A DNA stretch of 64,000 nt from Octopus bimaculoides (GCF_001194135.2 NC_069001.1:37706021-37770020), one strand, 5' to 3'. Shown: positions 7,912 through 52,470, numbered from the stretch's first letter. The notes: generated by a model not told the origin, from the sequence alone. Translations and numbers: made by a program.

Positions 7912-8400
7912 ATAGATGATTGTTGCTAATGAACTGTGGGAAGAAATAGCAACAACATTCTTTATTATGTCGACGTGGAAAATCTAAATGAAGGTTTGTT
8001 GTAAAATATAGTTGTGTTGAAGCTGTCATTGTCCAGTCTGAGTTGTGACTACTTGAATCTATCGTGACATCTTCGTCATTGGCTTTATATTAGTATGTAA
8101 GTATTATTAACAGAAACAACATCTACATTGTATAGGTCATGTCTTCTTTCTACTCCATCTGTTTGTTTTGATGTGTTCAAAGATGAAGTAAAGAAGAAAT
8201 TTTACTAAAGTAACGATGCTGTCTTAATCCCCATACGATAAGCTGTCACAGATGTAATATATGTTTTTATAGACTTCCTATTTCCTGGAAGAAATGTATC
8301 TCTTCCTGTTTTTCTGAAATGTTTTACTTTCAATAATTTTTGCATGTCCAGTAATTCAAGTAAGAGGAGGAGAGTTTCAGGGTATTTGGTCAACAGTGTA
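7912..8400 (+). promoter_or_regulatory. Conserved 5' module (non-coding exon, GTAAGT donor at 8097, intronic block) of the 9843 gene; predicted acceptor at 9300-9301
   Basis: gctgtcattgtccagtctgagttgtgactacttgaatctatcgtgacatcttcgtcattggct...tat|gtaagtatt recurs upstream of eight genes, always co-oriented with the gene. Confidence 0.7.
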
Positions 8401-9084
8401 CAGAAGCATTATTTACATTTGACAGATATTTGTCCTCATCTTATTTTTTGTTAACACAACGTTTCGACTGAGGTACCCTCCAACCTTCATCAGGTGTCTT
8501 GGGAAAATTTCGAACCGGGGTTCTCATTCCTAAGGTTTATAGATGTATAAGCCCTAAAATTCACTCCATAATTGCCCACGGGCATATGGCGTTGTGGTTA
8601 AGACCTGAATAATAATAATGATAACATCGAAAAATATCTTAGGAATGAGAACCCAGGTTCTGATGAAGGCTGGAGGGTATATCAGCTGTAAATATGATTT
8701 TATATTCTAATTAATCTTACATTATATAAAAAAAAAGAAGAGTCTAATGGGTGTCACGCAACTGGCACAGGTGCCAGTTGCGTGACACCAACATCTGCCA
8801 CAACTATGATTTCACTTCTACTCAAGCACAGCGCATTGCTGAAGGTCTCGGTCATTTGTCATTGCCTCTGTAAATATATGTGTGTGTGTATATAATTGTG
8901 CTCCACACATCCTCTCGCCATACTTGGTCTGCAGGCTGCCATTGATTAATGGAAACCAAAATAAAGTCTTCAAAGAAGAAATAAAGTATCTGACATGAAA
9001 GAGGAAGTTATGGAAAGGCAGTCACGTTTATCTATTAGGACATTTCACTGTATTAACCAGACGTTGTTAGACATCGCTGCTTAC

Positions 9085-9295
9085 NNNNNNNNNNNNNNNN
9101 NNNNNNNNNNNNNNNNNNNNNNNNNNNNNNNNNNNNNNNNNNNNNNNNNNNNNNNNNNNNNNNNNNNNNNNNNNNNNNNNNNNNNNNNNNNNNNNNNNNN
9201 NNNNNNNNNNNNNNNNNNNNNNNNNNNNNNNNNNNNNNNNNNNNNNNNNNNNNNNNNNNNNNNNNNNNNNNNNNNNNNNNNNNNNNNNNNNNNNN
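9085..9295. other. Assembly gap (N run)
   Basis: Run of N. Confidence 1.
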
Positions 9296-9842
9296 TTTCA
9301 GAATATCAGATGACATTGGCATAGTAGAAAGTTTTAAAGACTAAAGGAAAGTCTTATACACAAGAGACATAAACTTGTTTATATAAATCTATGCAAGAAT
9401 TTCTGTGAAATATTTGATCTGAACAGAGACAAGTTTCCAAAATTTCCCTTCTTCGTTCTCTGAAATGTGTACAGTATGATTTCAAGTTTTAATTAAACTT
9501 TGGATTGCAAAACAGTTTGCAGCATATTCCAATATCAACAGAGGTCACAATTGACAGAAACATAACAGAAGAAACATTTGCGAGGAATAAAATATAAAAG
9601 CAAAATTTTTAAATTATTGAAAAAGTTGCAAGACGCAATGAAAATTTTAGAAAAATAAAAAAGAAATAAGTGGAAATTTTACCGGTGAGTGTGTTAAATG
9701 ATAAGGCACTAAAAGAGAATGACTCTTCCCAGACAACAGAATATGCTTCAACACAAGAAATCACATAAAGAATCTTGCAAACCAAATCCAAAAATGAAAT
9801 AAAACTAAAAAAAAACTATTTGTTTCTTGTGGTTGTAAAATT

Positions 9843-10877
9843 ATGGAAGATAAACTATGTGAGACCAAGGCTATATGTGAAATACAGTCAAATAATATTG
9901 ATTTTCCTGGTGGTAAAATGAAGGAGAAAGAAAAGCCATTACACCACTGTGACATCTGTAAAAAATCATTCACAACCAAAAGTAACTTAACTACTCATAA
10001 ACTTATTCATACAGGAGAGAAAAAATATAACTGTAATATATGCAAAAAGTCTTTCTCTCGAAAAGGGAATTTAGGTGCTCACAAACGTATTCATACAGGA
10101 GAAGAACCATATCATTGTGATATCTGTGGTAAATCCTTCTCTGTAAGTAGTAGCTTAACTACTCACAAACGTATTCATACAGGTGAGGAGCCATATCAGT
10201 GTGATATTTGTAAAAAGTCTTTCTCCCAAACAGGTACATTGACTGCTCACAGACGTATTCACACTGGAGAGAAACCATATCACTGTGATATCTGTGGTAA
10301 ATCATTCTCTATTAATAGTCACTTAACTACTCACAAACGTATTCATACAGGGGAGAAACCATATCACTGTGATATCTGTGGTAAGTTATTTTCTGGAAAT
10401 AGTTCTTTAAATCTGCACAGACGCATTCACACAGGAGAAATGCCATATCACTGTGAATTCTGCGGGAAATCGTTCTCTGGGAGTAGTGATTTAACTAGAC
10501 ACAAACGTATTCATACAGGAGAAGAACCATATCGTTGTGATGTATGTGGTAAATCATTCTCTTTAAGTGGTAACTTAAGTAAACACAAAGTTATTCATTC
10601 AGAAGAGAAGTTACATCATTGTGATATCTGTGGTAAATCATTCTTTAGAAGAAATAATGTAACTAGACACAAATATATTCATATGAGAGAGAAGCCACAC
10701 CACTGTGATATCTGTGGTAAGTCATTCTCTGAAAAAAGTTCCTTAAACATACACAAATGTATTCATACAGGAGATAAACGATACCAGTGTGATGTCTGTC
10801 ACAAGTCGTTCACTCAGAAATGTAACCTAACCACTCACAAACGTATTCATTACAAGAGAGAATCTACACCCCTGTGA
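9843..10877 (+). CDS. C2H2 zinc-finger protein, 11 fingers
   Basis: 344-aa ORF, ATG in aaaattATGgaa context, 11 CxxC..HxxxH units; ends HYKRESTPL*. Confidence 0.93.
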   Translation: MEDKLCETKAICEIQSNNIDFPGGKMKEKEKPLHHCDICKKSFTTKSNLTTHKLIHTGEKKYNCNICKKSFSRKGNLGAHKRIHTGEEPYHCDICGKSFSVSSSLTTHKRIHTGEEPYQCDICKKSFSQTGTLTAHRRIHTGEKPYHCDICGKSFSINSHLTTHKRIHTGEKPYHCDICGKLFSGNSSLNLHRRIHTGEMPYHCEFCGKSFSGSSDLTRHKRIHTGEEPYRCDVCGKSFSLSGNLSKHKVIHSEEKLHHCDICGKSFFRRNNVTRHKYIHMREKPHHCDICGKSFSEKSSLNIHKCIHTGDKRYQCDVCHKSFTQKCNLTTHKRIHYKRESTPL

Positions 10878-15897: not shown

Positions 15898-17421
15898 TCA
15901 TTGTTGTGTGTGAGCAGCTACATGTTTGGTTAAGGAACCTTTTTGTGAGAAGGATTTACCACAAATATTGCACCGATGTGGCTTCTCTCCTGTATGAATA
16001 AATTTATGTTTAGTTAAAGTATCATTTCTTGAGAATGATTTACCACATATATCACAGGAATATGGCTTTTCCCCAGTGTGAACGCGTTTATGAGTGGTTA
16101 ACTGACTACTCACAGTGAACGCTCTGCCACACACAACACAGCAATATGGCTTCTCTCCTGTATGAATACGTTTGTGTTTAGAGAAGGCACTATTTCCAGA
16201 GAATGATTTACCACAAATATCACAGGTATATGGCTTCTCTCCTGTATGAATGCGTTTGTGAGTGGTTAGTTGGCTACTAACAGAAAATGATTTACCACAG
16301 ATATCACAGTGATATGGTTTCTCTCCTGTATGAACACGTTTGTGAGAAATTAATTCACCACTCTGACAAAATGATTTACCACACACATCACAGTGATATG
16401 GTTTCTCTCCTGTATGAGTACGTTTATGAGTTGTTAAGTCGCCAATTCCAGAAAATAATTTACTACAGATATCACAGTGATATGGCTTTTCTCCTGTATG
16501 AATACGTTTATGCTTAGTGAGGTCACCGTTCTGAGAGAATGATTTATTACAGATATCACAGTGATATGGCTTCTCTCCTGTATGAATGCGTTTATGTTTA
16601 GTTAAGTCTCCTTGTTGAGAGAATGATTTACCACAGACATCACAGTGATAAGGTTTCTCTCCTGTATGAACACGTTTGTGATTGGTTAATTGACAATTTA
16701 CAGAAAATGATTTACCACAGATATCACAACGATATGGCTTCTCTCCAGTATGAATACGTTTGTGAATGGTTATATCACCACTCCCAGAGAACGACTTTCC
16801 ACAGATATCACAGTGATATGGCTTCTCACCTGTATGAATACGTTTATGTTTAGTTAAAGCACCACTTCTAGAGAATGATTTACCACAGATATCACAGTGA
16901 TATGGCTTCTCACCTGTATGAACAGATCTATGTTTAGTTAAATAACTAAGTACTGAGAATGATTTGCCACAGATATTACAGCAATGTGATTTCTTTCCTG
17001 TGTGAATGAGTTTGTGAGTAGATAATTGACTACTTCCAGAGAATGATTTACCACAGGCATCACAGTGATATGGCTTTTCACCTGTATGAATACGCAGGTG
17101 TAAATTTAAGGCACTCTTTTCAGAGAATGATTTGCCACAGATATCACAGTGATATGGTTTCTCTCCAGTATGAATACGTTTATGAGAAATTAAATAACTA
17201 CTTCTATAAAATGATTTACCACAAATGTCACAGCGATATGGTTCTTCTCCCGTATGAAGACGTTGGTGAGTTGTTAAGTTACCTTTTTGAGCAAATGTCT
17301 TCTTACAGATGTCACACTGGTACAATGCTTTCCCTCGCTCTTTCTTTTTATTATTAGGGAAACCAATCCTGTTAGATTGTTTTTCGCAATTAGCCTTGTT
17401 CCCGTGTATTTCACCTTCCAT
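15898..17421 (-). CDS. C2H2 zinc-finger protein, 17 fingers
   Basis: 507-aa ORF with 17 canonical fingers; ends HVAAHTQQ*. Confidence 0.95.
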   Translation of the reverse strand: MEGEIHGNKANCEKQSNRIGFPNNKKKERGKALYQCDICKKTFAQKGNLTTHQRLHTGEEPYRCDICGKSFYRSSYLISHKRIHTGEKPYHCDICGKSFSEKSALNLHLRIHTGEKPYHCDACGKSFSGSSQLSTHKLIHTGKKSHCCNICGKSFSVLSYLTKHRSVHTGEKPYHCDICGKSFSRSGALTKHKRIHTGEKPYHCDICGKSFSGSGDITIHKRIHTGEKPYRCDICGKSFSVNCQLTNHKRVHTGEKPYHCDVCGKSFSQQGDLTKHKRIHTGEKPYHCDICNKSFSQNGDLTKHKRIHTGEKPYHCDICSKLFSGIGDLTTHKRTHTGEKPYHCDVCGKSFCQSGELISHKRVHTGEKPYHCDICGKSFSVSSQLTTHKRIHTGEKPYTCDICGKSFSGNSAFSKHKRIHTGEKPYCCVVCGRAFTVSSQLTTHKRVHTGEKPYSCDICGKSFSRNDTLTKHKFIHTGEKPHRCNICGKSFSQKGSLTKHVAAHTQQ

Positions 17422-18129
17422 AATTTTTCATCTTTCACCACAATATAGCGATGAATTTCTTTCTTTTTCTTAGTTATAATCTCTTTTTCCAAACAAATAT
17501 TTCTATGTTTCCATAAACTGTGAGTTTCTTTGAGATTTGAAAATGCTGCAAACTCCTTTGCAACTGACATTTAATTCCAAACAGTGAATCAGAGAAATTT
17601 TGCATAGATTTAAACAAACAGATTTATATCTCTTCTGTGTAACATCTTCCTTCAGTCTTGAACAAATGATTAATATTGATGTGTTTCAAGTTAAAAATTT
17701 CCCTCTTTGTCAAGGTCATCAGATATTCTGAAATAAAAGAGAAACAGTCTAAAATATCAACCATAGTAAAAAATAAATGAATAAATTTGAAACCCTAAAA
17801 ATTAAACAACTTGCACATACACACAGTCTATTATCGATTCTGGATCAAAGGACATCATGTAATCAGTCAGAACTCCTTTAGTTTTTGGCATTTTTAGAAA
17901 ATTTTTGTGAATTTGTGTTCTACAAACTCTATCTAGTACACCTTAACTTTTATTGATGACACTGGCATTGGAAAGCTTGCAATGGACATTGCAAGTGCAT
18001 CCAGGTAAGTGTGTAACAAGACATTTACTAACAGAAAACTATGCTCTTAAAATAAATCTTTTACATACCTTTTTTAAATCACTGTGGATAAATCGCAGCA
18101 ATGACCTCAAACTTTCCAACACCTGTGTT

Positions 18130-18480: not shown

Positions 18481-19100
18481 ATCTCTAACTAGCAATATCA
18501 AAATCACTTTAAATTACCGATGTCGAGCAAAACTTGTCACGTTTATATTTTAGAAATAAAGGTAAAAGCTGGCTAAACAATGTATTCAACTGACTTTAAG
18601 AAATACAAACTTTCTCTTTGAGTTGGGGTTAAGATATGGGGGAATAACGATAACTGAAATTGAGTGTGGAAAGGAAAACAGGGGAAGTATTAAGACAACA
18701 ATAAGTACTGTCAGCTAAAGCAAATTTTTCAGCTCACTATATTTACATGCAACATCCAAGCGTATGGGATCAACATCGTTACTTTAGTAAAATCTCTTCT
18801 TTTAACTGAAAACACCAAAACAAACAGATGTAGTAGAAAAATGACACGACCGATATATAATGTAAGACGTAGTTTCTATTAAGAATACTTACATATTAAT
18901 ATAGAGCCAGTGACGAAGATTTCACATGTCAGATTGAACAATGACAGCTTCAATACGTCTACATTTACATCAATCGACAGCATAGTATTCACTCTAGGAC
19001 ATCGAAATGCGGCATTCGTGATGAAAGCAACAATAATGGGGGATGTATAAAAATAGACTCGGCAATCTTGAACTACCGAAACGAATTAGTAAACACTACC
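18470..19100 (-). promoter_or_regulatory. Conserved 5' module of the 17421 gene (donor 18892, acceptor 17728)
   Basis: Reverse-complement copy of the module with acttac at 18887-18892; gatattctgaaa acceptor at 17722-17733. Confidence 0.68.
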
Positions 19101-22245: not shown

Positions 22246-22356
22246 TCAAGTAACTTTTTTCAGATACTGATTTATAATAGACATCACAGTTCCCTACTAC
22301 AAGAATATGTTTGTGTGTCCTGGACAGAGAAGTCTGAAAGAATGATTTATCAGATT

Positions 22357-23556
22357 TCACAGGGATGTAGATTCTCTCTTGTAATGAATACGTTTGTGAG
22401 TGGTTAGGTTACATTTCTGAGTGAACGACTTGTGACAGACATCACACTGGTATCGTTTATCTCCTGTATGAATACGTTTGTGTATGTTTAAGGAACTTTT
22501 TTCAGAGAATGACTTACCACAGATATCACAGTGGTGTGGCTTCTCTCCTGTATGTGTAACTTTATGTTTAGTTAAGCTACCACTTAGAGAGAATGATTTA
22601 CCACAAACTTCACAACTATATGGCTTCTCTCCAGTATGAATACGCTTGTGTGTAACTAATTGGCTATTTCCAGAGAATGCCTTCCCACAGATATCACAGT
22701 GATATGGCATTTCTCCTGTGTGAATACGTTTGTGTATATTTAAGGTGCCCTTTCCAGAGAATGATTTACCACAAACATCACAGTGATATGGTTTCTCTCC
22801 AGTATGAATACGTTTATGAGAAATTAAGTAACTATTTCTACAGAATGATTTACCACAGATATCACAAAGATATGGTTCTTCTCCTGAATGGATAAGTTTG
22901 TGTGTATCCAAGTTACCTTTTTGAGAGAAAGACTTTTTACAAATATCACACTGATATGGCTCTTCTCCTGTATGAATACGTTTGTGAGTAGTTAAGCTAC
23001 TACTTACAGAGAAGGATTTACCACAGATATCACAATGATATGGTTCCTCTCCTGTATGAATACGTCTATGAGTAGTTAAGCTACCACTAACAGAGAAGGA
23101 TTTACCACAGATATCACAATGATATGGTTCTTCTCCAGTATGAATACGAATGTGAGTAGCTAAGCTACCTTTTTGAGAGAAAGATTTTTTGCATATATTA
23201 CAGTTATATGCTTTCTCTCCTGCATGAATACGTCTGTGAGTTGTTAAGTTACTATTTACAGTGAATGATTTACCACAGATTTCACAGTGATATGGCTTCT
23301 CTCCTGTATGAATTCGTTTGTGTAAGTTTAAGCCACCCTTTTCAGAAAATGATTTACCACAGATATCACAGTGATATGGTTTCTCGCCTGTATGGATGCG
23401 TCTGTGAACAGTTAAGTTACATTTTTGAGAAAATGACTTGTTACAGATATCACAGTGATATATTTTTCCTTTCTCTTGTTTTTCCTCAGCAGAAAAATCA
23501 AGTCTCTTAAACTGTGGTTCACATTCAAACTTGTTCTCACGTAGTTCATCTTCCAT
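22357..23556 (-). CDS. C2H2 zinc-finger protein, 13 fingers
   Basis: 399-aa ORF; last two fingers and tail HYKRESTSL* nearly identical to the 9843 gene. Confidence 0.94.
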
Positions 23557-23917
23557 AATTTTACATCATTCACCACAATATACAAATGGTTTTTTTCTAG
23601 TTTTGCTTTTATATTTTATTCCTCGCAAATGTTTCTTCTGTTATGTTTCTGTCAATTGTGACCTCTGTTGATATTGGAATATGCTGCAAACTGCTTTGCA
23701 ATCCAAAGTTTAATTAAAACTTGAAATCATACTGTACACATTTCAGAGAACGAAGCAGGGAAATTTTGGAAACTTGTCTCTGTTCAGATCAAATATTTCA
23801 CAGAAATTCTTGCATAGATTTATATAAACAAGTTTATGTCTCTTGTGTATAAGACTTTCCTTTAGTCTTTAAAACTTTCTACTTTGCCAATGTCATCTGA
23901 TATTCTGAAATAAAAAG

Positions 23918-24984: not shown

Positions 24985-25510
24985 AGTACACTGTTGACCA
25001 AATAACCTGAAACTCTCCTTATTTGTGTCACTGGACATGCAAAAATTATTGAAAATAAAACATTTCAGAAAAATAGGAAGAGATACGACATATTTTCCAG
25101 GAAATGGGAAATCTATAAAAACATATATTACATATGTGACAGCCTATCGTATGGGGATTAAGACAGCATCGTTACTTTAGGAAAATTTCTTCTCTTCACT
25201 TTCATTCCATTATCTTTGAACACATCCAAACAAACAGATGTAGTAGAAAAAGAACACGACATATACAATGTAGATGTTTCCGTTAATAATACTTACACGT
25301 TAATATAGATAGAGCCAATGACGAAGATGTCACGACTCAGACTGGACAACGACTGCTTGGACACACCTTCTATATTTTACAACAATCGTCGGTGACCGTT
25401 TTCACTCTGGGACATCGAAGTGCGACATTTAAAATGAAACTACAATAGGCCATGTACAAAAATAGACCCGGCAATCCTCAACTAGACGAAACGAATACAT
25501 TAACGCTTGA
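24985..25510 (-). promoter_or_regulatory. Conserved 5' module of the 23556 gene (donor 25296, acceptor 23905)
   Basis: acttac at 25291-25296 inside the module; acceptor gatattctgaaa near 23899-23910. Confidence 0.7.
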
Positions 25511-27495: not shown

Positions 27496-29019
27496 TTACT
27501 GTTTTATATGAACAGCTCTATGTGTGGATAAGTGACTTCTTTGGGAGAAGGATTTACCACAGATGTTACAGTAGTGTGGCTTCTCTCCTGTATGAGTGCG
27601 TTTGTGCACAGTTAAAGTATCATTTCTAGAAAAGGAATTCCCACATATATCACAAAAATAGGGCTTCTCTCCTGTGTGCACATGTTTGTGTACAGTTAAG
27701 TTACTACTGAAAGAGAATGATTTACCACAGATATCACAGTGATATGGCTTCTCTCCTGAATGAGTGTGTTTATGTTTAGTTAAGGTATCATTCTTAGAGA
27801 AGGATTTACCACAGATATCACAGGAATATGGTTTCTCTCCAGTGTGAATACGTTTGTGGGTAATTAACTGACTAGTTACACAGAATGATTTGCCACAGAT
27901 ATCACATCGATATGGTTTCTCTCCTGTATGAATACGTTTGTGAGAATTTAAGTCACCACGCTGACAAAATGCCTTTCCACACACATCACAGTGATATGGC
28001 TTCTCTCCTGTATGAGTGCGTTTGTGAGCTATTAAATCACCAATTGTAGAGAATGATTTACTACAGACATCACAGTGATATGGCCTCTCCCCTGTATGAA
28101 TACGTTTGTGCTTAGTTAAGTCACCATTTTGAGAGAATGATTTACCACAGATATCACACTGATATGGTTTCTCTCCTGTATGAATGCGTTTATGTTTAGT
28201 TAAGTCCCCATGTTGAGAGAATGATTTTCCACAGACATCACAGTGATATGGTTTCTCTCCTGTATGAACACGTTTGTGATTAGTTAATTGACAATTTACG
28301 GAAAATGATTTACCACAGATATCACAACGATATGGCTTCTCTCCAGTATGGACACGTTTGTGAATATTAATGTTACCACTTCTAGAGAATGATTTACCAC
28401 AAATATCACAGTGGTACGGTTTATCTCCAGTATGAATACGTTTGTGAGTAGTTAAGCAACTGCTTGCAGAAAATGCTTTCCCACAAATATTACAGTGATA
28501 GGGTTTCTCCCCTGTATGAATAACTTTATGTTTAGTTACATCACTCTTCTCATAGAATGATTTACCACATATCTCACAGCAATATGGTTTCTCTCCTGTA
28601 TGAATACGTTTATGCTGAGTTAAGTCACCATTTTGAGAGAATAATTTTCCACAGATATCACAGTGATATGGCTTCTCTCCTGTATGTATGCGTTTGTGAT
28701 TGATTAAAGAACCTTTTACAGAGAATGATTTACCACAGATGTCACACTGATATGGTTTTTCTCCTGTATGAACTCGTTTGTGAATTGTTAGGTTATCTCT
28801 TCTAGGAAATGATTTACCGCAGACATCACACTGGTATGGTTTCTCTCCAGTATGAATACGTTTGTGAATAGTTAGGTAACACTTCTGAGCAAATACCTTC
28901 TTACAGAAATCACATTGGTAGAACCCTTTTTCTTTCTTTTTCATTCTATCATCAGGGACACAATTACTTTGAGTGAGAGTTTCACACTGGCCCTGTTTCT
29001 CATCTAATTTAACATCCAT
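27496..29019 (-). CDS. C2H2 zinc-finger protein, 17 fingers
   Basis: 507-aa ORF with 17 fingers; ends HRAVHIKQ*. Confidence 0.95.
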   Translation of the reverse strand: MDVKLDEKQGQCETLTQSNCVPDDRMKKKEKGFYQCDFCKKVFAQKCYLTIHKRIHTGEKPYQCDVCGKSFPRRDNLTIHKRVHTGEKPYQCDICGKSFSVKGSLINHKRIHTGEKPYHCDICGKLFSQNGDLTQHKRIHTGEKPYCCEICGKSFYEKSDVTKHKVIHTGEKPYHCNICGKAFSASSCLTTHKRIHTGDKPYHCDICGKSFSRSGNINIHKRVHTGEKPYRCDICGKSFSVNCQLTNHKRVHTGEKPYHCDVCGKSFSQHGDLTKHKRIHTGEKPYQCDICGKSFSQNGDLTKHKRIHTGERPYHCDVCSKSFSTIGDLIAHKRTHTGEKPYHCDVCGKAFCQRGDLNSHKRIHTGEKPYRCDICGKSFCVTSQLITHKRIHTGEKPYSCDICGKSFSKNDTLTKHKHTHSGEKPYHCDICGKSFSFSSNLTVHKHVHTGEKPYFCDICGNSFSRNDTLTVHKRTHTGEKPHYCNICGKSFSQRSHLSTHRAVHIKQ

Positions 29020-32052: not shown

Positions 32053-33204
32053 ATGGAAACTGAATTCTGTGAGGACAAAGTTCAAAAGAAAGAGAATGTG
32101 ATATTACATAAATGTGATATTTGTAAAAAGTCATTCTCTCAGAAAAGCAACCTAACTACTCACAAACGCATACATTCAGGGGAGAGACCATATCAATGTG
32201 ATATCTGTGGTAAATCATTTAACAGAAATGATGTTTTAACATCTCACAAATTCATTCACACAGGAGAGAAACCGTTTTACTGTGATATCTGTGGTAAATC
32301 ATTTTCTCGAATTGATACTTTATCTTCTCACAAAGTCGTTCATACAGGAGAGAAAGCATATTCCTGTGATATCTGTGGTAAATTGTTCTCTCAAAATGGT
32401 AGTTTAACTGCACACAGACGTATTCATACAGGAGAAAAACCATTTCATTGTGATATCTGTGGTAAAGCATTCTCTCAAAGTAGCAGCTTAACTGCACACA
32501 GACGTATTCATACAGGAGAAAAACCATATAATTGTGATATCTGTGGTAAATCATTCTCTCAAAATGAGAGTTTAACCACTCACAATCGTATTCATATGGG
32601 AGAGAAGCCATATCAGTGTGATATCTGTGGTAAATCATTTTCACGTTGTACAACCCTAACTATACACAAACGCCTTCATACTGGAGAAAAACCATATCAC
32701 TGTGATATCTGTGGTAAATCATTCTCTGAAAATGGTCACCTAAGTAATCACAAACGTATTCATACAGGGGAAAAGCCATATCACTGTGATATCTGTGGTA
32801 AATCTTTCTCTCAGAATGGTGACTTAACTAAACATGTACGTATTCATACTGGAGAGAAACCATATCACTGTGATATCTGTGGTAAATCATTCTCTAAAAA
32901 TGATAACCTAACTTCTCATAAACGTATTCATACTGGGGAAAAACCATATCACTGTGATATCTGTGGTAAATCATTCTCTGGAAATAGTACCTTGATTACT
33001 CACAAACGCATTCATACAGGAGAGAAACCATATCACTGTGATATCTGTGGTAAGTCATTCTCTGAAAGTGGTACCTTATTTACTCATAAACATATTCATA
33101 CAAGAGAAAAGAAATATCATTGTGATATCTGCAGTGAATCATTCTCTGAAATTGGTGCCATATCAAAGCACAAATGTATAAGCAGTGGTGCTATCTTATT
33201 GTGA
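32053..33204 (+). CDS. C2H2 zinc-finger protein, 12 fingers plus a degenerate 13th
   Basis: 383-aa ORF with shortened leader; ends [12 protein letters not shown] through a frameshift. Confidence 0.93.
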
Positions 33205-34889: not shown

Positions 34890-35760
34890 GCTATTTCTAG
34901 CAACTCGAGTGATCACTGGAACATTTACAAAGGTTTCGTCTTTCAACACCACCAAACACCTAAAGCGTCTCTCACCCCTAATCACAATCATTAGTGTGGT
35001 TAAAGAACTTGTTTTCATATAATGATAATAATGAATTTGTGTTGCAAGATTCCCGAAACAGATATTCTATTTCAGGACGGTCAATTTTTTTTTAACCAAA
35101 TAAACACACACACTATATATTCGTCCTTCACTCGCTTATTACTGTTCTTATTTTAACTCATGTCCATTGTCCATAATAATAACTTATCTCATCAAAATGA
35201 AATGTGAAAGATATACCAATGCGAGGGAAGTTCTTTTTGTTTTGTTTTTTACAGCGATGAAAAATGCACCTCCCTCACTTTGGTGCGTCTTAATTATACA
35301 CCGAAGACGTTGGTTGATAGATGATTGCTAATTAACCGAGGAAAGAAATAGCTACAACATTCTTTATTATGTCGATGTGAAAAATCTAAATGAAGGTTTG
35401 TTGTAAAATATAGAAGTTGTGTTGAAGCTGTCCTTGTCCAGTCTGACTCGTGACAACTTGAATCGATCGTGACATCTTCGTCATTGGCTCTGTATTAATA
35501 TGTAAGTATTATTAATAGGAATAACATCTACATTGTATAAGTTGTGTCATTTTTCTACTACATCTGTTTGTTTTGATGTGTTCAAAGATTATGGAAAGAA
35601 AGGTTACTGTTTCCAAAAGAAATTATCCTAAAGTAACGTTGGTTTCTTAATCCGCGTACGGGTTGGTTGTCACATATGTAATAGAAGTGAGTTGATAAAC
35701 TTGCTTTAGCCGACAATATCTATTGTCTTGATACTTTCACTGTTTTCCTTTACTTTCGGA
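34890..35760 (+). promoter_or_regulatory. Conserved 5' module of the 37275 gene (donor 35502, acceptor 36937-36938)
   Basis: Module with gtaagt at 35502; extended upstream homology to 41350..42110. Confidence 0.7.
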
Positions 35761-37274
35761 AGAGAGACGAAGAGGAATAAAAGAAATTGAAATGTTAAAA
35801 AAGAAAAAAAAAATTGTGGTAGAATATAATCTCCGATATTTCAAACGTGGATCCGAAAAATTTATTTGTAAAAAGATTTAAAATTGAAAAGTTACGGAAG
35901 GAAGGGATGTGACCCAAATTTTGAAAGGTCGGGGGGGGGGGGGATAAAACTACGATGTTTCAAATGAATGTCAGAAGTAATTTTTGAAAACTGCTTGTAT
36001 GAGGCCTTATAGAATCAGTCCCCTTCTCTTCCTCTACCTGTCCCCTCTGCCTACTTTACTACTTATTTCTCTGTCATTAGTAGTCCTACTTCATTCATCT
36101 CACTTCTTGCACACATCTCCAGACTTCTGCTTTGGCATTTTTGCAATTTCCCCCATTCATAGCAGCAGTTCTTAAGTTTCTGGCTTGAAGTGGAGCAGAT
36201 GGGTAGCTCATGGCCTCTTTCCTTCACCTTAAATAAAGACGATTTTTGTGATTATTTATTGGCCGACAGTGGTCTCTTACAGATGTCCTGATGTTTCTAT
36301 GTAATGTATTACCATTAGCATCAAACAGTGAACCCAGTGGCCAGGTACAGCTGGGGAGAGCAAAGCATATAAAACATGGTTACCCAGGAGGGAGAGAGAG
36401 AGAGAGAGAGAGATCAAAAATGAGAATGAGTGTGAGAGTGCAAGAGAGAGTGAGAGAGAAATAGTGGAGAATGTGCCAGGGCACATCTGCAAGGTGCAGG
36501 GATGAGAATATAAATGGGATGGTAGAGTATTGCCAAGGATGCATGAGTTGGGAGTAGAGGGTTCACATGAATGCGAAGAGGTGAAGGAATGCAGGAGTAG
36601 GGTGGGGGAACAACAGTATAGCAATGAAACAGTGGGCAGGGCAGCAAGGACAGGATTGGGATGTAGGGGAGGGAGAGATAAGCATAAGCATAGTGCAGGA
36701 AAAAGAGGAAGAGAAGGAATGTTGTTTGGTTTGTTGGGATAAGGGTGTGTGACAAAAATTTTCACACACAAAAATTTTAGAACCCAGTTTTGCTCAAGAG
36801 GTTGGTTCTATAAATGTTTTGTCTTGGAAAGGGGTTCATGTGTTGGGTGAATTTCAAGTATAGTTTTTTGATGTAGAAGAAATGCAGTAAAATGTCTGCT
36901 TTTGAACGATTCTCTATATTGTTTCTCTTTTATTTCAGAATATCTTATGTCATGTGGAAGGTAGAATTCTTCAGTACAGATGCATCAATATTTATCCTCT
37001 TTTAAAGAAAAAAAGAAAAGATGTCATAGAACAGATATAAACCTTGTTTATATAAATGTGTGGTGGAATTACTTTGAAATATCTCTACTTCACTGTCTCG
37101 AATATGTACAAGATAATTTTATATTGTAATTAAACTTGGATCGGGAATGGGTTTGCAGCATTTTCAAATGTCTACAACTTTCACAGCAGAAGAAATATTT
37201 GTAAGGAATGAAATATAAAAACAAAATATAACAGAATAGAACATCTGTGTGTTGTGGTGAGAGACAAAAACATT

Positions 37275-39011
37275 ATGGAAACTGAATGGAACTGTGAAAC
37301 ACGGATTAATAAGATGAACTTTCCTGACGATGTAAGCAAAGAGAAAGGGGAAACATTATTCTACTGTGATGTCTGTAAAAAGTCATTCCCTCACAAATGT
37401 ATTCATAAAGGAGAGAAAGCATACCATTGTGATATTTGTGGTAAATCATTTTCTAGTCGTAGTAACTTAACAAGACACAAAGTCATTCATACAGGAGAGA
37501 AGCCATACCACTGTGAAGTCTGTGGTAAATCATTCTATCAAAATGGTGGATTAACTTCTCACAAACGCATTCATACAGGGGAGAAGCCATATCACTGTGA
37601 TATCTGTGGTAAAATGTTCTCTCAAAATTGTGAATTAACCTCTCACAAATATATTCATACTGGTGCAAAGCCATTCCAATGTGATGTCTGTGATAAATCA
37701 TTTTCTCTAAGGAGTCATTTAACATTTCATAATCGTATTCATACAGGGGAGAAACCATATCACTGCGAAATTTGTGGTAGATCATTCTTTGGAAGTGGTA
37801 ACTTAACTAAACATAAACGTATTCACACAGGAGAGAAACCATATCAGTGTGATATTTGTGGTGAATCATTCTCTCATGGGAATAGTTTAATTGCACACAA
37901 ATACATTCATACCGGAGAGAAGCCACATCACTGTGATATTTGTGGTAAATCTTTCTCTCAAAGTAGCCACTTAAAAACTCACAAATACATTCATACTGGA
38001 GAGAAGCCATATCTCTGTGATATCTGTGGTAAATCTTTTTCAAGAAGTGCTGGATTAACTTCTCATGTACGTATTCATACAGGAGAGAAGCCATATCACT
38101 GTGAGATATGTGGTAAGTCATTCTCTAATGGAAGTGGAGAGTTAACTAAACACAAACGTATTCATACAGGAGAGAGGCCATATCACTGTGATATCTGTGG
38201 CAAATCATTCTCTCAATCAAGTCACTTAACTACTCACAAATATATTCACACAGGAGAGAGGCCTTATCATTGTGATGTCTGTGATAAATCTTTCTCTGGA
38301 AGTAGTTACTTGACTCCACACAAACGTATTCATACAGGAGAGAAGCCATATCACTGTGATATTTGTGGTAAATCATTCTCTCAAAGTTGTGAATTAACTC
38401 TTCACAAATATATTCATACAGGTGAAAAGCCATTCCAGTGTGATATCTGTAATAAATCATTCTCACTAAGGACATCTTTAAAATCACATAATCGTATTCA
38501 TACAGGAGAGAGGCCATATCACTGTGACATCTGTGGTAAATCATTCTGTGGAAGTGGGGACTTAACTAAACATATACGTATTCATACAGGAGAGAGGCCA
38601 TATCACTGTGATATCTGTGATGAATCTTTCACTCATGGGAATAGTTTAATTGCACACAAATACATTCATACTGGGGTGAAGCCATATCATTGTGATATTT
38701 GTGGTAAATCATTCTCTCGAAGTAACCACTTAAAAACTCACAAATATACTCATACAGGAGAGAAGCCATATCGCTGTGATATTTGTGGTAAATCTTTTTC
38801 AGGAAGTGCTGGATTAATTTCTCACAAACGTATTCATACAGGAGAGAAGCCATATCAGTGTGATATCTGTGGCAAATCATTCTCTGATGGAATTGGTGCT
38901 GTAACTAAACACAAACGTATTCATACAGGAGAGAGGCCATATCACTGTGATATCTGTGGTAAATCATTCATCCAAAAATCTCACTTAACTAAACATGTAT
39001 GTATTCAATGA
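37275..39011 (+). CDS. C2H2 zinc-finger protein, 20 finger units (first deleted internally, last lacking its second His)
   Basis: ORF track 37254..39011 opens on GTG; first ATG at 37275 (aacattATGgaa). Confidence 0.93.
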
Positions 39012-41349: not shown

Positions 41350-42110
41350 TTCCGAGCTAACTCTTTTGTAATTAACCATTTACACTAGGAAACATTTTCC
41401 AAAGTGTTTCCTTTTTCAAAACCTTCAAACACCTAAAGTGTCTCTTCTCACAAAACCACGATAATAAGTGTTGTAAAGGAACTTGTTTTCGTCTATTTTA
41501 ATAATAATAATAATAATAATAAAGATAAACCAATATGAGGGAAGTGCATTTTTTAAACATCACTGAAATATGTACCCCCCTCACTTTGGTGCGTCTTAAT
41601 TATACATCGAAGACGGCGATCGATAGATGATTGCAAATTAACCGAGGAAAGAAATAGCTACAACATTCTTTATTATGTCGATGTGAAAAATCTAAATGAA
41701 GGTTTGTTGTAAAATATAGAAGTTGTGTTGAAGCTGTCATTGTCCTGTCTGAGTTGTGACTACTTGAATCGATCGTGACATCTTCGTCATTGGCTCTGTA
41801 TTAATATGTAAGTATTATTAATGGATACAACATCTACATTGTATAAGTTGTGTCTTCTTTCTACTACATTTGTTTGTTTGGTTGTGTTCAAAGATTATGG
41901 AAAGAAAGGTTACTGTTTCCAAAAGAAATTTTCCTAAAGTAACGATAGTGTCTTAATCCTCAAACGGGTCGGCTGTCACATATGTAATAGAAGTGAGTTG
42001 AAAAACTTGCTTTAGCTGACATTACCTATTGTTGTGTGAATACTTTCTCTATTTTCCTTTCCACTCTCTATTTCAATTATCGTTATTCCTCTACATCTTA
42101 ATATCAACAC
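41350..42110 (+). promoter_or_regulatory. Conserved 5' module of the 43480 gene (donor 41808, acceptor 43140-43141)
   Basis: Module with gtaagt at 41808; direct paralogue of 34890..35760. Confidence 0.7.
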
Positions 42111-43479
42111 AACGAAAGTTTACACAAACCCCCCACTTTATGGTCTGAATCTAATCAAAATTTACTCTGGCCTTGTTTCATAAAGTGTAAAAGTAATCAG
42201 CCTCGGTTACTTCGAAGCCTTCTGGGATCTTTCTGACCGAAAATTTTTATTTATTTACCTTTGTTTTAAAGTGAAAGATCTATGTACGTGTATACGAAAT
42301 AGATGTGTGTGTGTGAAAGAGAGAGCGAGAGAGAGTGAAGGGGCGTGTTGTCATGTATACATACATACATCAATACATATGCGTACACCCTTTTTGTGTG
42401 CATGTGTGTGTGTGTTTGAGAGAAAGAGAGTGTGTGTTGTCATGTATGTGTAAGAGGCACACTCTCTCTTTCTCTCCCGCTCTCTCTCTCTCTCACACAC
42501 GTTCATACATCTTTCACTTTCTCTCTTTCACTTTATAACAGAAGTAACAGGTGATTTTCAGGATAAAAATTGTTAAAAAAAAAAAGGCTTCTATTCATGT
42601 AAATTGATTACTATTGTTTGGATAGTTCCAATTAAATAAGAGCAGAAGTTAGTTTAAATATATATACATGCATAAGTACCGTGAATTCCCATTCTACAAA
42701 CTGGCAAACAATTCTGTGAATACTATACTGGGCAACGCTGGGTAGTAAAGTCTAGTATACATATATCATTGTATCAACCAGATTATTGGATGTTGTTATA
42801 CACCGCTAGTCACAATGCGCTTCATCACTTTTGAATGATGCCACCCTGCTGACTAGACAGGCCAGTTTTTCCTCTGAACAGAATGTCAGTCCATTGCAGG
42901 GTTGCCCATTTACAGCTAGGTTGCGCACGTACACACACACACATACGTGTGTGTATGCAGTATGTATATAAAGCTTTTAGTCATGAAAAAGGATGGATGT
43001 ATTAGATGTGTTCCAATGTCCAGGTAGAAGTTTATAACTACAGTTTATCAATATTAGAAGAAATGGAATAAGATGTCCAGTGTTGAATGTCTTTGGTTTA
43101 AGTATCCTCAGCATTTTATATTTTGTTCTCTTTCCTTTCAGAATATCAAATGATATTCAGAATATCAAATGATATATAAATGATATTATTTACCTGAGAT
43201 CCATCAATGTTTATCCATCTTTTAAAGACAAATGGAAGATGTCGTACAGAACAAATGTAACCATTCATTATATAAATCTGTGGTAGAATTACTGTGAAAT
43301 ATTTACTCTGAGCTGATATTATTTGCAAAATAGCCATACATGATTTTGCTTTCTGAATAAATTTGGACAAAAATGGAGTTTGTGGTACATTCAAATCCCA
43401 ACAAAGACCACAGTTGATGGAAGGAAATATCAAACGAAAACAAAATCTCTTGAATGTTTATGGTGCGAGACAAACAATT

Positions 43480-44751
43480 ATGGAAGATGAGTTGTGTGAG
43501 AATAAAGTTAAATGCGAAACTCTGGTTGAAAAGATTGATTTAGTTGACAAGAAAATGGAAGAGAATGGAAAACCTTTATATCACTGTGACATCTGTAACA
43601 AGTCATTCTCTCAAAAAGGTAACCTTCGTATTCACAAACGTACTCATACTGGAGAAAAACCATTTCCCTGTGATATCTGTGGTGGATCCTTTGCTCAGAA
43701 GAATTCCTTAATTTTACACAAACGCATTCATACAGGTGAGAAACCATATCATTGTAATATCTGTGGTAAATCATTCTCTACAAATTGTAACTTAACTAAT
43801 CACACACGTATTCATACAGGAGAAAAACCATATCATTGTGATATCTGTGGCAAATCCTTTTCTCAAAATTGTGAATTAACTTCTCATAGACGCATTCACA
43901 CAGGAGAGAAACCGTATCAGTGTGATATTTGTGGGAAATCATTCTCTGAGACAGGTATATTAACTTCTCACAAGCGTATTCACACTGGAGAGAAACCATA
44001 TTGTTGCGATATCTGTGGTAAATCATTCTCTCAGATAAGTCCCTTAACAAAGCACAAACGTATTCATACAGGAGAGAAACCATATCAGTGTGGTATTTGT
44101 GGTAAATCGTTCTATGGAAGTAGCGAATTAACTGTACACAAACGTATTCATACAGGAGATAAACCATTCCACTGTGATATCTGTGGTAAATCATTCTCTG
44201 GGAGTGGTGTCTTAACTAAACACATACGTATCCACACAGGAGAAAAACCATATCACTGTGATATCTGTGGCAAATCATTCTGTGCAAGTAGTAACTTAAC
44301 AACACACAAACGCATTCATACAGGAGAGAAACCATATTTCTGTGATATCTGTGGTAAATCATTCTCTGTAAGTACTCACTTAATTACACACAGGTACAGT
44401 CATACAGGAGAGAAACCATATTGCTGTGACATTTGTGGTAAATCATTTACAAGAAATAGTGACTTAAACATGCACAAGCACATTCATACAGGAGAGAAGC
44501 CATATTACTGTGATGTGTGTGGTAAATCATTTTTTAAAAGTGGTAATGTAACTAGACACAAACATATTCATACAGCAGAGCAACAGTTTTCTTGTGATAT
44601 CTGTCATAAATCATTCTCTCAAAATAGTGAATTAACTAAGCACATACATATCCATACAGACGAGAAGCCATACCACTGTGATGTCTGTGGCAATTCATTC
44701 TCTCAAGAAACCAATTTAACTTCACATATAAATAGTCATAAAGACCAATAA
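43480..44751 (+). CDS. C2H2 zinc-finger protein, 14 fingers
   Basis: Paralogue-equivalent ATG at 43480 (MEDELCENK); an in-frame upstream ATG exists at 43417. Ends HINSHKDQ*. Confidence 0.92.
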
Positions 44752-48573: not shown

Positions 48574-49761
48574 TCATTGTTGTATATGAATACTTACATG
48601 TGTAGCCAAATTACTTCTTTGAGAAAATGACTTACCACAGATATTACAGTGATATGGCTTTTCTCCTGTATGAATACGCTTGTGAATAGTTATGTTACCA
48701 CTATGAGAAAATGATTTCCCACAGATATTACAATAATAAGGTTTCTCACCTGTATGGATGCGTTTATGAGAAGTTAAGTAACTGCTTCCAGAGAATGATT
48801 TGCCACAGATATCACAGTGATATGGTTTTTCACCTTCATGAACGTGCTTGTGAATAATCAGATTACCTTTTTGAGAGAATGATTTACTGCAAATATCACA
48901 GTGATATAGTTTCTCTCCAGTATGAACCCGTATGTGTTTAGTTAAATGACTATTTTGAGAGAATGATTTACCACAGATACTACAGTGATATGGTTTCTGT
49001 CCTGTGTGAATACGTTTATGCATAGTTAATTCACTACTTCCAGAGAATGATTTACCACAGATGTCGCAATGATATGGCTTCTCTCCTGTATGAATAAGTT
49101 TGTGCGTTGTTAAGTGACTCAACTGAATGAATGATTTATCACAGATATCACAGTGATATGGTTTTTCCCTTGTGTGAATACGTTTGTGTTTGTTTACAGC
49201 ACTACTTACAGAGAATGATTTACCACATAAATCACATTGATATGGCTTCTCCCCTGTATGAATGTGTTTGTGTATAGTCAAGTGGCTACTTACAGAAAAT
49301 GATTTACCACAGATATCACAGTGATTTGGTTTCTCTCCTGTATGAATACGTTTGTGAGAATTTACAGCACTACTTACAGAGAATGATTTACCACAAATAT
49401 CACACTGATATGGCTTCTCTCCTGTGTGAACACGTTTGTGAGTAGTTAAGTTACTAATTTGAGAGAATGATTTCCCACAGATATCACAATGATAGGGCTT
49501 CTCATCTGTATGGATACGTTTGTGAGAAGTTAAGGCACTATTCACAGAGAATGATTTACCACAGACATCGCACTGATACGGCTTTTCACCTGTATGAATA
49601 CGTTTATGGGCAGTTAGGCTACTTTTTCCAGAGAATGACTTTTTACAAACATCACACTGATGTATTTTTTCTTTTTTTTTCTTTTTATCATTAGGAAAAT
49701 CAACAATCCTCTTAGACTCCGTTTCACATTCAATATTACTTTCACTCAACTCATTTTCCAT
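48574..49761 (-). CDS. C2H2 zinc-finger protein, 13 fingers
   Basis: ORF track 48574..49782 opens on GTG; first ATG at 49761 (MENELSE). Ends HVSIHIQQ*. Confidence 0.93.
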
Positions 49762-52174
49762 TATTTTTTTGTCTCTCACCACAACATAAAAAGGTTTCCC
49801 TTCTTTTAGTTTTTAGTTTATTGTTAATAATTATTTCTTCCGCTATACATACATTTGCTACAATCTTTGTCAATTTTGAAGATGTTGCAAACTCTTTTGT
49901 AATCCAAAGTGAAGTAGGGATGTTTTGAAAACTAATCTCAGTTCACGGCAAATGCTTCACAGTAATTCTACCATAGATTTATATAATGAGGGTTATATCT
50001 GCTCTCAATCTTCTTTTAATCTTTAAAAGATGATCCAAAAGTAAAATATTCTTTTATTCCAATGTGATATGATATTCTGAAATAAAAGAGAAACAAAATA
50101 AAATATACTTAAAAAGTGGACATTCTAGTACATTTCTTCTATATTAGTAAATTGTATATATAAACACTTACATGAACAGTGGAACTCATTTAACACATCC
50201 AGCCCTTTTCATGACTAAAAGTTGTATACACAGTGGGAGCCACTTAATTGCAGACATCTAAGTTATTGTTACATCTGCTGGCGAATGTTATCAGCCAGTT
50301 ACTATCTGAACAACAACAAATAGATAAAACATGGAGATGCAAACAAACGAACACCGGTTGTTAAGTGGTGAGAGGACGACAAACACAAAGATAGATGACC
50401 TGCCCACCACAATAGAAATGATATCCTAAAATGAAGGTGCCATGTAAAAAGCACTGATGCTATGTAAAAGGCACCCTGTACACTCTGTAAAGTTTTTGGC
50501 ATTAGGAAGAGCATCCAACTGTAGAAACCAAGCCAAAAGAGATTATGAAACCTGGTGCGGCCCCTCGTCTTGCCAGTTCCTGTCAAACCGTCTAACCCAT
50601 GCCAACGGACGTTAGATGATGATGGTAAACGACAGGCTTCCACACATTTTCTGTCTACTAAATTCACTAACGAGGTATTGGTCACCCAGGAGCTATATTT
50701 CAAGACACTTGATTAAGATTCCACGTAGTGGAACCGAACCTGAAACAATGTGGTTACAAAGTGAGACTCTTAACCACATGGCGATGCCTGCGCCTCGTAA
50801 GATTAACAAAAGAAAAAAAAAATCGGGAGGTGTTTCAGAATATTCTACTCTGACTCTATTCCGTCGAAACTCCCTCTCTCTCCCTCTTTAAAATGAGTAT
50901 CTTTAAATGACAGTTTAAAGAAATACGTTTTGGGAATCTAAAAATAAAAGGTGACAAATTACTCACATTACAGAAATTGAGGTTTAGAAAGTCGGGGACA
51001 AAAGAAGGGAAAGGGTCCTAATCAACCCCCACCCTCACCCAATTGGTTTTCTAAATTTTATAATCGTAGCTGTGTGATTACGAAGGTTGCTTTGCAACCA
51101 TGTGGTCTTCGGTTCAATCAGACTGTGAGGCACCTTGACCAACTGTCTTCTATAGTCCTGGGCAGACCAATAAATTTGGTAGACGTTAACTAAAGAAGCC
51201 CGCCGCGCGCGCGCGTCGTTGTGTTTGTGCTTTGTCCCCACACTGCTTGACAACCGGTGTTGGTTGGTTTTATGTCTCCGTAATCTCGCGGCTCGGTAAA
51301 AGCGACCATTTGAATAAGCAGTGGGCTTATATGTACCAGAGTTCATCACGGCCACATTCCAAGCAAAAGGTAATTGTAATCTCGAAAATGTATTTCTGCA
51401 AAAGTTTCTAACAAATTCGGAATGTGGGGCATCAATCTCTAGTTATACCCATACACGTTTCGTATTTACAGACATTGACCGAAGTCTGTGTATTTCCACA
51501 GATGATGTTTAGCATTCACACAACTTAATTACTGGTACAAATTGATCACTGAAATAATACACAATATTACACGGTAATAAAATGAAGCGATTGAAAGGTA
51601 ATATAAACTATAATGTGTGATGTAAAATTAGTAAGAGGAAGAAAGACATGTATACGGTGTGACTTGAATATGTCAGAGGATGTTGTCAATCCCGTGCAAT
51701 TGGCTGCCACATGTGAGTTGAAAAACTTGTTTTAACTGACATTACCTATTGTTGTCTTAATACATTCACTGTTTTTCTTTCCACTCACCATTTCAATTAT
51801 CGTTATTCCCCCTTAAGTGAAGATCAACTCAAAGAGAAAGTATTTCGTAAGGTCACTTCAATGCATTGTATAATCACAATTTATGTTTATTTCTAGCATA
51901 TAAACTTGACGAACTTTTGTCCAACATCGCTAATTTTAAGTGGTTTTGATGTTGCTAGTCAAAGATCATTATTAATTCTCCACTCCATCACAGAATCTAA
52001 AATCGGTGATTAATAATATTGAAGCATTAAAAATACAATTGAACAACAGATATATTTGTGTGTAAACATCTATACACAAATATATTCATGTATTGAGTTC
52101 TAACAAACACGCATGCATACAAATAATAGGTGTAGGCTGGGTTAGTATTCGACATGTCCGACAGAATTTCCTTA

Positions 52175-52470
52175 CTTCACTTTCTTTCCTTTATCTTTGA
52201 ACACATCCAAACATACAGATGTAGTAGAAAGAGGACACGACCTATACAATGTAGATGATGTTTCTGTTAATAATACTTACATATTAATACAGAGCCAATG
52301 ACGAAGATGTCACGATCGATTCAAGTAGTCACAACTCAGAATGGACAATGACAGCTTCAACACAACTTCTATATTTTACAACAAATCTTCATTTAGATTT
52401 TCATATCGTCGTAAAGACTGTAGAAGCGATTTCTTTCTACAGATAATTAGCAATAATCATTTCTATTTAA
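52175..52470 (-). promoter_or_regulatory. Conserved 5' module of the 49761 gene (donor 52280, acceptor 50077)
   Basis: acttac at 52275-52280; acceptor gatattctgaaa at 50071-50082. Confidence 0.68.

Follow-up and report, generated by a model that had tools for sequence, protein, structure and literature searches.

A conserved promoter-like module at the 5' ends of eight clustered C2H2 zinc-finger genes of Octopus bimaculoides

Many of the znf genes of zebrafish chromosome 4 share a 'sharp' promoter of the TATA-box type and a 5' end that is highly conserved, and they are transcribed together (Hadzhiev et al. 2019, PMC6370886; Wells et al. 2023, PMC10547256), and one oligonucleotide set matches dozens of them (PMC6370886; PMC10547256). 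Here we describe a module of about 205 bp at the 5' ends of eight C2H2 zinc-finger (ZNF) genes on chromosome CM046621.1 of Octopus bimaculoides, in a stretch of 64,000 nucleotides (nt), the whole of which was analysed (hereafter the window) and on which a preliminary description had been made. The window contains eleven single-coding-exon C2H2 poly-zinc-finger genes, G0 to G10, has 35.9% G+C, and is interrupted by three runs of N.

Conserved blocks of promoter and non-coding first exon within repeat-rich intergenic DNA were reportedly described by Lane and colleagues in 2002 for mouse vomeronasal V1R (and some odorant-receptor) clusters, a pattern linked to exclusive receptor choice. In the clustered protocadherins, a tandem array expressed in neurons, a conserved sequence element (CSE) is located at the promoters of the variable exons; these are spliced to shared constant exons, and the promoter is chosen via CTCF and distal enhancers. 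Cephalopod protocadherins themselves are without that variable/constant-exon scheme (PMC9068888). The C2H2 ZNF expansions of coleoids are tandem and lineage specific, with finger arrays in one exon (PMC9068888; PMC12513265), and the window is one of these coleoid clusters. Exons, introns, and promoters of ZNF genes are not described in PMC9068888 or PMC12513265, and the words 'exon', 'intron', 'promoter', and 'UTR' (untranslated region) do not occur in the latter.

A shared block at the 5' ends of eight genes

A search of the window with a profile of the module found exactly the eight genes G1 to G8, each with one upstream module in its own orientation, as the preliminary description had proposed, and GTAAGT begins exactly at the eight donor positions of Table 1 on the strand of the downstream gene. 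The whole-module profile had eight full-length matches (E 6e-85 to 1e-128) and otherwise only two partial ones, to its distal part, and the 205-nt core profile matched the same eight (E 3e-41 to 2e-67), the next match having an E value of 0.5. All eight cores point toward their gene (1/256 by chance) and lie 375 to 2204 nt upstream of the acceptor. The core is a single continuous block of ~205 nt, from -104 to +100 around the donor, that is common to all eight copies, and the nine-base GTAAGTATT is identical in 8/8. Similarity limits at ~-104 and ~+100 from the donor recur across many independent pairs, so that the universal unit is one ~205-bp block and not an exon with a separate intronic element. 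The proposed intron-proximal block was thus found to be conserved, but not as an element of its own, since the universal part is continuous from -104 to +100; it is better read as part of a single putative promoter/leader/5' splice-site unit. Likewise, of the several hundred nt of intron side said to be conserved, ~100 nt are present in all eight copies, whereas +101 to +300 is kept in subsets only.

The core changes more slowly than four-fold sites, whole coding sequences, and flanks, in agreement with the proposal that the module persists while the fingers diverge. Differences per site in the core, gaps excluded, were 0.116 in the exon-like part, 0.163 in the intron from +10 to +100, and 0 in GTAAGTATT. 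In these eight genes, comparison of codons 1 to 99 gave a difference of 0.38 at four-fold degenerate sites and a Nei-Gojobori pS and pN of 0.56 and 0.22, respectively; the whole coding sequences are 74 to 81% identical, i.e., 0.19 to 0.26 differences. Length-normalised identity was 0.82 for the core and for the intron from +1 to +100, 0.65 to 0.69 for the 5'UTR with the coding start, and ~0.58 to 0.60, equal to shuffled controls, for 3' flanks, distant upstream sequence (beyond -300), and deeper intron. The module changes ~3- to 4-fold more slowly than four-fold sites and also more slowly than the coding sequence behind it, and these rates reject a divergence equal to that of neutral flanks.

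The block opens with a TATA-like TAAAATATAG, which is kept in 5/8 copies, with variants in G1, G2, and G5, and is followed ~29 nt downstream by an initiator-like TCATTG; from these motifs, the leader would measure ~55 to 75 nt, or up to ~105 nt were the start further upstream. An inverted CCAAT box (CATTGGC, about -21) is kept in six copies and broken in G2 and G4. The CpG observed/expected ratio over -300 to +100 was 0.99, compared to 0.54 in random non-coding windows (P about 0.001), and the enrichment covers the core and the sequence upstream of it but not that downstream; undepleted CpG is what an unmethylated promoter would show. Judged by such features, the core probably combines a core promoter, a non-coding leader exon, and a promoter-proximal intron element.

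Sequence on either side of the core is shared by fewer genes. According to the identity matrix, the upstream region from -300 to -105 splits into the classes {G1,G6,G7,G8}, {G2,G3,G4}, and {G5}; the block of the second class (class B) is distinct from that of the first (class A), and G5 has its own. G2, G5, G6, and G7 carry the distal intron block (+110 to +310), G1 and G3 carry half of it, and G4 and G8 essentially lack it in place. The neighbours G2 and G3 have in common a 19-nt deletion within the exon-like sequence of the core.

The TTTCAG/AATATC-type acceptor (slash at the junction) attributed earlier to ten genes is indeed present in G0 to G9 as [TC]AG/A[AT]TATC, with the variants TTTTAG in G9 and ATTATC in G5, and is absent from G10. 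Predicted introns measured 375 to 2204 nt, in accordance with the range of about 375 to 2200 nt given before. Mid-introns of paralogues are unrelated, as described: self-comparison of the window found no similarity there, nor in 3' flanks or intergenic DNA, paralogous similarity being confined to the coding exon, the 5'UTR/acceptor region, and the module. That mid-introns are filled with transposable elements (TEs) held in part, as 0 to 612 nt per intron match dispersed repeats, a lower bound given the small reference set. Conservation over 150 nt before the acceptor proved weak, with a score of 0.69 for -100 to -1 versus 0.615 for shuffled sequence and the shuffle level for -200 to -101; the pre-acceptor block is clear only in G0, G4, G5, G7, G8, and G9, and it begins at a common TTTTAG in G0, G7, G8, and G9, at about -174 to -120 (~42975-43025 in G7). 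The annotated range of a G0 isoform ends at TAG 9322-9324, 23 nt into exon 2 of G1, which would fit an isoform using the 9302 acceptor.

Several further features of these exons and introns were observed. In G7, G8, and G9, a pre-acceptor stretch of 36 to 45 nt ends in GTAGAA, GTAAGT, or GTAAAA and is a candidate small alternative 5'UTR exon. The G7 acceptor and the first 19 nt of its exon 2 stand in tandem at 43136-43180 (TTCAGAATATCAAATGATA twice), giving two candidate acceptors, 43142 and 43161. Very short upstream ORFs (open reading frames; e.g., ATG ACA TTG GCA TAG) begin 8 to 10 nt into exon 2 in most genes (9310-9324 in G1 and homologous positions after the acceptor in G3, G4, G6, G7, and G9), and the 260- to 540-nt 5'UTRs hold additional upstream ATGs. 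The G1 5'UTR is longer because of a ~190-nt insertion at 9611-9801, a dispersed repeat that matches unrelated octopus loci. An origin of the intron as an introner or from TE termini was rejected, as the intron ends, read from the sequence, are not inverted repeats.

Origin and maintenance of the module

In every unit, an intron with canonical splice sites is retained, together with upstream, non-transcribed homology in neighbour-correlated classes, which supports the earlier proposal of DNA-level duplication (inversions included) of a promoter-exon-intron-coding-exon unit and not retroposition; poly(A) tracts and target duplications were not specifically sought. We consider it reasonably probable that the eight genes are two-exon units in which a duplicated promoter-leader module has been held by purifying selection, with some gene conversion. 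The ~205-bp module, comprising the TATA-like box, the initiator-like TCATTG, a short leader, the GTAAGTATT donor, and the first ~100 nt of intron, would then act as one unit of core promoter, leader, and promoter-proximal or 5'-splice-site-proximal control region, and its leader would be spliced to the TTTCAG/AATATC acceptor of a large exon holding a 5'UTR of 260 to 540 nt and the entire coding sequence. Copied with its gene through tandem and inverted segmental DNA duplication, the module would have been kept near-constant, chiefly by purifying selection with local reinforcement by gene conversion, and in the same period four-fold sites diverged to 38%, flanks became unalignable, and repeat insertions stretched the introns. 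Co- or auto-regulation through the module, as suggested in the preliminary description, is pure conjecture.

The association with ZNF genes was borne out over ~165 kb of sequence: every copy of the core there lies at a ZNF 5' end, and none was found away from ZNF genes in the rest of the window, ~13 kb of flanks (5.8 kb to the left and 7 kb to the right, both partly gaps), and ~79 kb of other octopus ZNF loci (an O. sinensis contig of 4 kb and ~75 kb of ZNF loci from O. sinensis and from chromosome CM046628.1 of O. bimaculoides). No module was found in four related ZNF loci (one on O. bimaculoides CM046628.1, two on O. sinensis CM016888.1, and the unplaced 4-kb contig L007). The related genes have part of the exon-2 5'UTR in common with the window genes and not the module, which is thus particular to this sub-cluster or to some members of the family. 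Since these four loci are not orthologues, selection and conversion stay unseparated by them. In the ~165 kb, the core does not occur as a dispersed TE or short interspersed element would; the distal block does occur detached and inverted.

Several observations weigh against a selected promoter-leader module. The transcription start is placed by weak motif matches alone, and the three exon-side bases before the donor are variable and off consensus. G0, G9, and G10 have no core within the window (there are gaps upstream of G0), and the absence of the module from related ZNF genes elsewhere means that it is not needed for the whole family. Exact look-ups of the G7, G2, G4, G8, and G1 proteins returned no record, and no window gene was found with a transcript contig. 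Substitutions are spread evenly across the core, mostly as singletons, and leave no motif-like islands (the longest invariant run is 9; P 0.75), a pattern that fits either uniform constraint or recent homogenisation. Finally, gene conversion is active in the cluster (99% tracts of G1 and G3; a 548-nt tract of G6 and G7 at 89%) and may account for part of the module's similarity.

That concerted evolution alone, by repeated short gene conversion or unequal exchange and not selection, produced the excess similarity seems to us unlikely. Besides the even scatter of singletons in the core, it draws on signs of recent exchange (98.7 to 99% identity of G1 and G3 on both sides of gaps and at the 3' end; a G4 fragment at 6740-7221 with 97.7% identity), on a G6-G7 identity of 90 to 95% that runs into flanks the other copies lack, and on the grouping of G1, which is with G6, G7, and G8 on the upstream side and with G3 on the downstream side. 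However, the same limits at -104 and +100 return across many pairs, as expected of a functional unit, whereas conversion tracts would end differently between pairs. Class-specific indels and upstream blocks persist and track gene neighbourhood, and the upstream classes and the G2/G3 deletion follow local duplication, which argues for descent and against cluster-wide homogenisation. Moreover, the 99% tract of G1 and G3 left their cores unhomogenised (74% identical, length-normalised), and the finger repeats are better conversion substrates and yet more diverged (74 to 81%). A Sawyer-type run test for conversion is confounded by rate differences along the block. We favour constraint with some conversion over conversion alone. 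It is very improbable that the module is a mobile, TE-derived cassette, i.e., a short promoter-and-donor element younger than the genes that spread upstream of pre-existing ZNF genes. The core has sharp common ends and is less diverged than the genes, and the distal block is detached in G9 and inverted in G8, but 8/8 cores face their gene from the same position in the unit, flanks are common within neighbour classes, inspection of the alignments by eye revealed neither terminal inverted repeats nor target duplications, and ~92 kb of other sequence yielded no copy, nor did an exact-pattern scan of viral and metagenome collections.

Two other explanations accept the block as functional and differ on its anatomy. 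In one, which we regard as rather unlikely, it is a promoter with other exon limits: GTAAGT would be unused, with CATTGGC and a preceding TATATTAATA-like box driving a start inside the 'intron' block, and the true leader would then end at a later donor, e.g., GAA/GTGAGT at ~+215 in the distal block. The retention of CATTGGC in 6/8 copies and of the GTGAGT donor-like site in G2, G6, G7, and G9 is consistent with this, as is the distal block that G9 retains without a core; in addition, model XP_052831393.1 ends in an exon starting at 25113, after TTTTTATAG, within the G3 intron/distal region, so that splice signals there are used in at least one model. Yet GTAAGTATT is the sole splice-like signal invariant in 8/8 copies, GTGAGT is missing in G1, G3, G4, G5, and G8, the CCAAT box is broken in two copies, and the CpG enrichment does not extend downstream of the core. 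In the other, leader and intron start would be kept for an RNA-level role in pre-mRNA or mRNA (a translational stem-loop, ADAR editing) or as a small RNA, and this we think highly unlikely. Eight mRNAs would all start with the same leader, and the 19-nt deletion of G2 and G3 falls in the loop of an imperfect inverted repeat within the exon-like part, GAAGCTGTCA...TGACATCTTC, but the stem needs a start upstream of the TATA-like box, folding z-scores were only -1.8 and -1.6, none of the 33 predicted pairs of the consensus fold showed compensatory changes and several were broken, and Rfam gave no match in the module (spliced-leader RNA and microRNA included).

The cluster, its gene models, and assembly gaps

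Coordinates of the genes, cores, exons, and flanking blocks are collected in Table 1; the eight start codons of G1 to G8 given in the preliminary description were correct.

Table 1. Positions of genes and module parts in the window (CDS, coding sequence; donor, first base of GTAAGT).
Feature	Coordinates	Strand	Details
ATG or CDS, forward genes	G0 4152-5780, G1 9843, G5 32053, G6 37275, G7 43480, G10 60490	+
ATG, reverse genes	G2 17421, G3 23556, G4 29019, G8 49761, G9 57027	-
G1 core	7996..8190	+	-101 to +94 around donor G 8097; TATA-like box, exon-like leader, GTAAGTATT, first ~100 nt of intron; nhmmer E 1.9e-62
G2 core	18806..18973	-	donor 18892; most diverged copy; nhmmer E 3.2e-41
G3 core	25205..25385	-	donor 25296; nhmmer E 3.2e-51
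G4 core	29637..29838	-	donor 29734; shortest intron, 375 nt; nhmmer E 8.1e-63
G5 core	31113..31286	+	donor 31214; 22-nt deletion in intron part; head-to-head with G4; nhmmer E 3.4e-53
G6 core	35398..35596	+	donor 35502; nhmmer E 8e-65
G7 core	41704..41902	+	donor 41808; nhmmer E 2.8e-64
G8 core	52186..52384	-	donor 52280; nhmmer E 1.6e-67
G7 motifs	TAAAATATAG 41710-41719; TCATTG with A at 41739; putative leader 41739-41807	+	read from sequence
Class-A upstream (promoter-side) block, G7	41521..41703	+	blastn, pairwise high-scoring segment pairs, identity matrix
Class-A homologues	G6 35207-35397, G1 ~7912-7995, G8 ~52385-52458(-)
Distal intron block, G7 (+110 to +235)	41919..42042	+	nhmmer distal profile, alignment
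Distal block homologues	G6 35613-35728, G2 18687-18804(-), G5 31297-31402
Distal block, first half only	G1 8190-8296, G3 25088-25198(-)
Coreless distal block, G9 intron	58719..58828	-	nhmmer E 1.1e-19, alignment
Inverted distal block, G8 intron	51679..51835	+	blastn 83.7% over 123 nt; nhmmer E 2.7e-10
Exon 2 starts, G0 to G9	3789, 9302, 17727, 23904, 29359, 31792, 36939, 43142, 50076, 57369
G0 exon 2	3789..5780	+	TTTCAG/AATATC, 5'UTR, CDS 4152-5780
G1 exon 2	9302..10877	+	5'UTR 541 nt; CDS 9843-10877
G2 exon 2	15898..17727	-	5'UTR 306 nt; CDS 17421-15898, 17 fingers
G3 exon 2	22357..23904	-	CDS 23556-22357
G4 exon 2	27496..29359	-	CDS 29019-27496
G5 exon 2	31792..33204	+	CDS 32053-33204
G6 exon 2	36939..39011	+	CDS 37275-39011
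G7 exon 2	43142..44751	+	acceptor duplicated (43142, 43161); CDS 43480-44751
G8 exon 2	48574..50076	-	CDS 49761-48574
G9 exon 2	55423..57369	-	TTTTAG/AATATC; CDS 57027-55423

The eleven long ORFs consist solely of C2H2 fingers, 8 to 18 apiece, and Pfam detected no KRAB, SCAN, BTB, or ZAD domain in the ZNF proteins of the window. A search with an N-terminal profile matched many Octopus proteins and yielded no orthologues of the window genes, and the output of a search with the full-length G7 protein was dominated by long vertebrate ZNFs. Exact look-ups of G0 and G10 returned the genome record alone, and the N-terminus of G4 is the exact N-terminus of RefSeq model XP_052831393.1 (O. bimaculoides). 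DNA surrounding this model matches window 39019-14958 at 100% identity, including the gap, which places the window in assembly GCA_001194135.2, where window positions equal record positions minus 37,706,020. Public models fuse neighbouring genes (G5 with G6, 32053-39011; G3 with G2, 23556-15898; G9 with G8, 57027-~48574; 692, 816, and 870 amino acids) or splice inside finger arrays (G4, 29019-24958; G1, 9843-10877; 167 and 171 amino acids); the annotation of the cluster looks unreliable, or else it mirrors read-through transcripts. Fusion by reading through the 5'UTR of exon 2 was ruled out, as the G2 5'UTR is full of stops; the fusions must therefore join finger to finger and are uninformative on exon 1.

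Other copies and fragments were observed in and around the cluster. The first finger of G6 is truncated (start, 37275-37410), with about seven codons fewer than in paralogues. A twelfth ZNF gene of the same family lies ~1.8 to 3.2 kb past the right end of the window (L006 15325-16710, minus strand; 13 fingers; MEDELYDNKVECE...), and the ~4 kb preceding it, half of which is gap, yielded no core. An incomplete ZNF copy, comprising the end of the 5'UTR, the ATG, and two fingers, occupies 6740-7221 (plus strand), ~700 nt upstream of the G1 module; it matches G4 29162-28681 at 97.7% identity and represents either a recent partial duplication or a pseudogene. In the interval that separates the head-to-head G4 and G5 modules, 30532-30755 and 30896-31099 form a 224-nt inverted repeat with 87% identity, which may be the trace of a pair-forming inversion or a TE with inverted ends. 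A fragment of the 3' end of eukaryotic 18S rRNA (12104-12281, minus strand; Rfam RF01960, 77 bits, model positions 1667-1823) is set in a G+C- and CpG-rich block (~11100-12500) between G1 and G2; it may be a remnant of ribosomal DNA (rDNA) or of an rDNA-targeting element. An ORF at 11241-11888 (minus strand) overlapping this block had no Pfam match.

The module, exon, and coding sequence are free of gaps, and with no gap in the reading frames, continuity of frame is not at issue. One gap (14168-14597) is in the intergenic DNA that separates the 3' ends of G1 and G2. The other two interrupt the predicted introns of G1 (9085-9295) and G3 (23918-24286). They stop 6 and 13 nt short of the acceptor, respectively, so that exon 2 begins 7 and 14 nt beyond the gap, and they occupy the same place in two homologous tracts with 98.7 to 99% identity on both sides (8774-9084 with 24597-24287; 9296-9605 with 23917-23608). 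G1 and G3 are also 98% identical over the first 100 nt after the stop codon, yet their cores and N-termini differ. At the homologous place, ungapped paralogues have a T-rich tract and the pre-acceptor block. The two gaps look like assembly failure at a hard or duplicated stretch, and the ~99% tracts reflect either recent gene conversion or an assembly artefact. The exon 1-exon 2 links and intron lengths of G1 and G3 depend on scaffolding, and the same N runs are present in the chromosome-scale record.

Meaning of the module and comparison with known systems

The observation is well above chance and the mode of duplication is supported; the labels 'first exon' and 'cis-regulatory' are ones that we infer. 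The module is a genuine yet rather ordinary mark of the duplication of whole genes at the DNA level, with constraint on a control region, and the finding is ordinary if its conservation proves to be gene conversion only. The element records growth of the cluster by whole-unit DNA duplication and later exchange among copies. As a 205-bp marker of the 5' end of each gene, it could help to correct fused or mis-spliced annotation models, and it is a possible probe or oligonucleotide target for many paralogues together as well as a concrete candidate for testing whether paralogues are regulated together or differentially.

By analogy, the module might be a dedicated control unit that makes the ZNF sub-cluster one regulatory family, an idea that we hold to be quite doubtful. 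The module could then recruit a common factor that evokes coordinated bursts, as in the znf/miR-430 bodies of zebrafish chromosome 4, or one promoter could be chosen stochastically per neuron, as for protocadherins and V1R, with the distal block as an orientation-independent enhancer. We know of no exclusive-choice mode of expression for octopus ZNFs. ZNF paralogues fall into different co-expression modules (PMC12513265), which sits uneasily with a shared promoter that implies simple co-regulation. If such a control unit does exist, it would be the first promoter-level mechanism described for a cephalopod ZNF expansion, and these C2H2 expansions have repeatedly been linked to nervous-system evolution.

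Among the systems described above, the protocadherins resemble the octopus cluster in having one conserved promoter element before each member of the array; the octopus unit, however, is complete, with its own coding exon and stop, and protocadherin-type shared constant exons were not found. The mouse V1R genes are alike in their layout of a non-coding leader exon, an intron, and one coding exon and in their islands of similarity between unrelated, repeat-filled DNA, but belong to another gene family and phylum. The closest documented analogue, which is not a homologue, is the znf cluster of zebrafish chromosome 4. Both are lineage-specific tandem poly-ZNF clusters in which many paralogues start with a near-identical promoter/5'UTR. 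The zebrafish first exon is coding (FiNZ), whereas that of the octopus genes is predicted to be non-coding, and the sequences are unrelated. Function in zebrafish was shown by cap analysis of gene expression (CAGE) and imaging, whereas the octopus module is known from sequence and is seen in eight genes of one cluster only.

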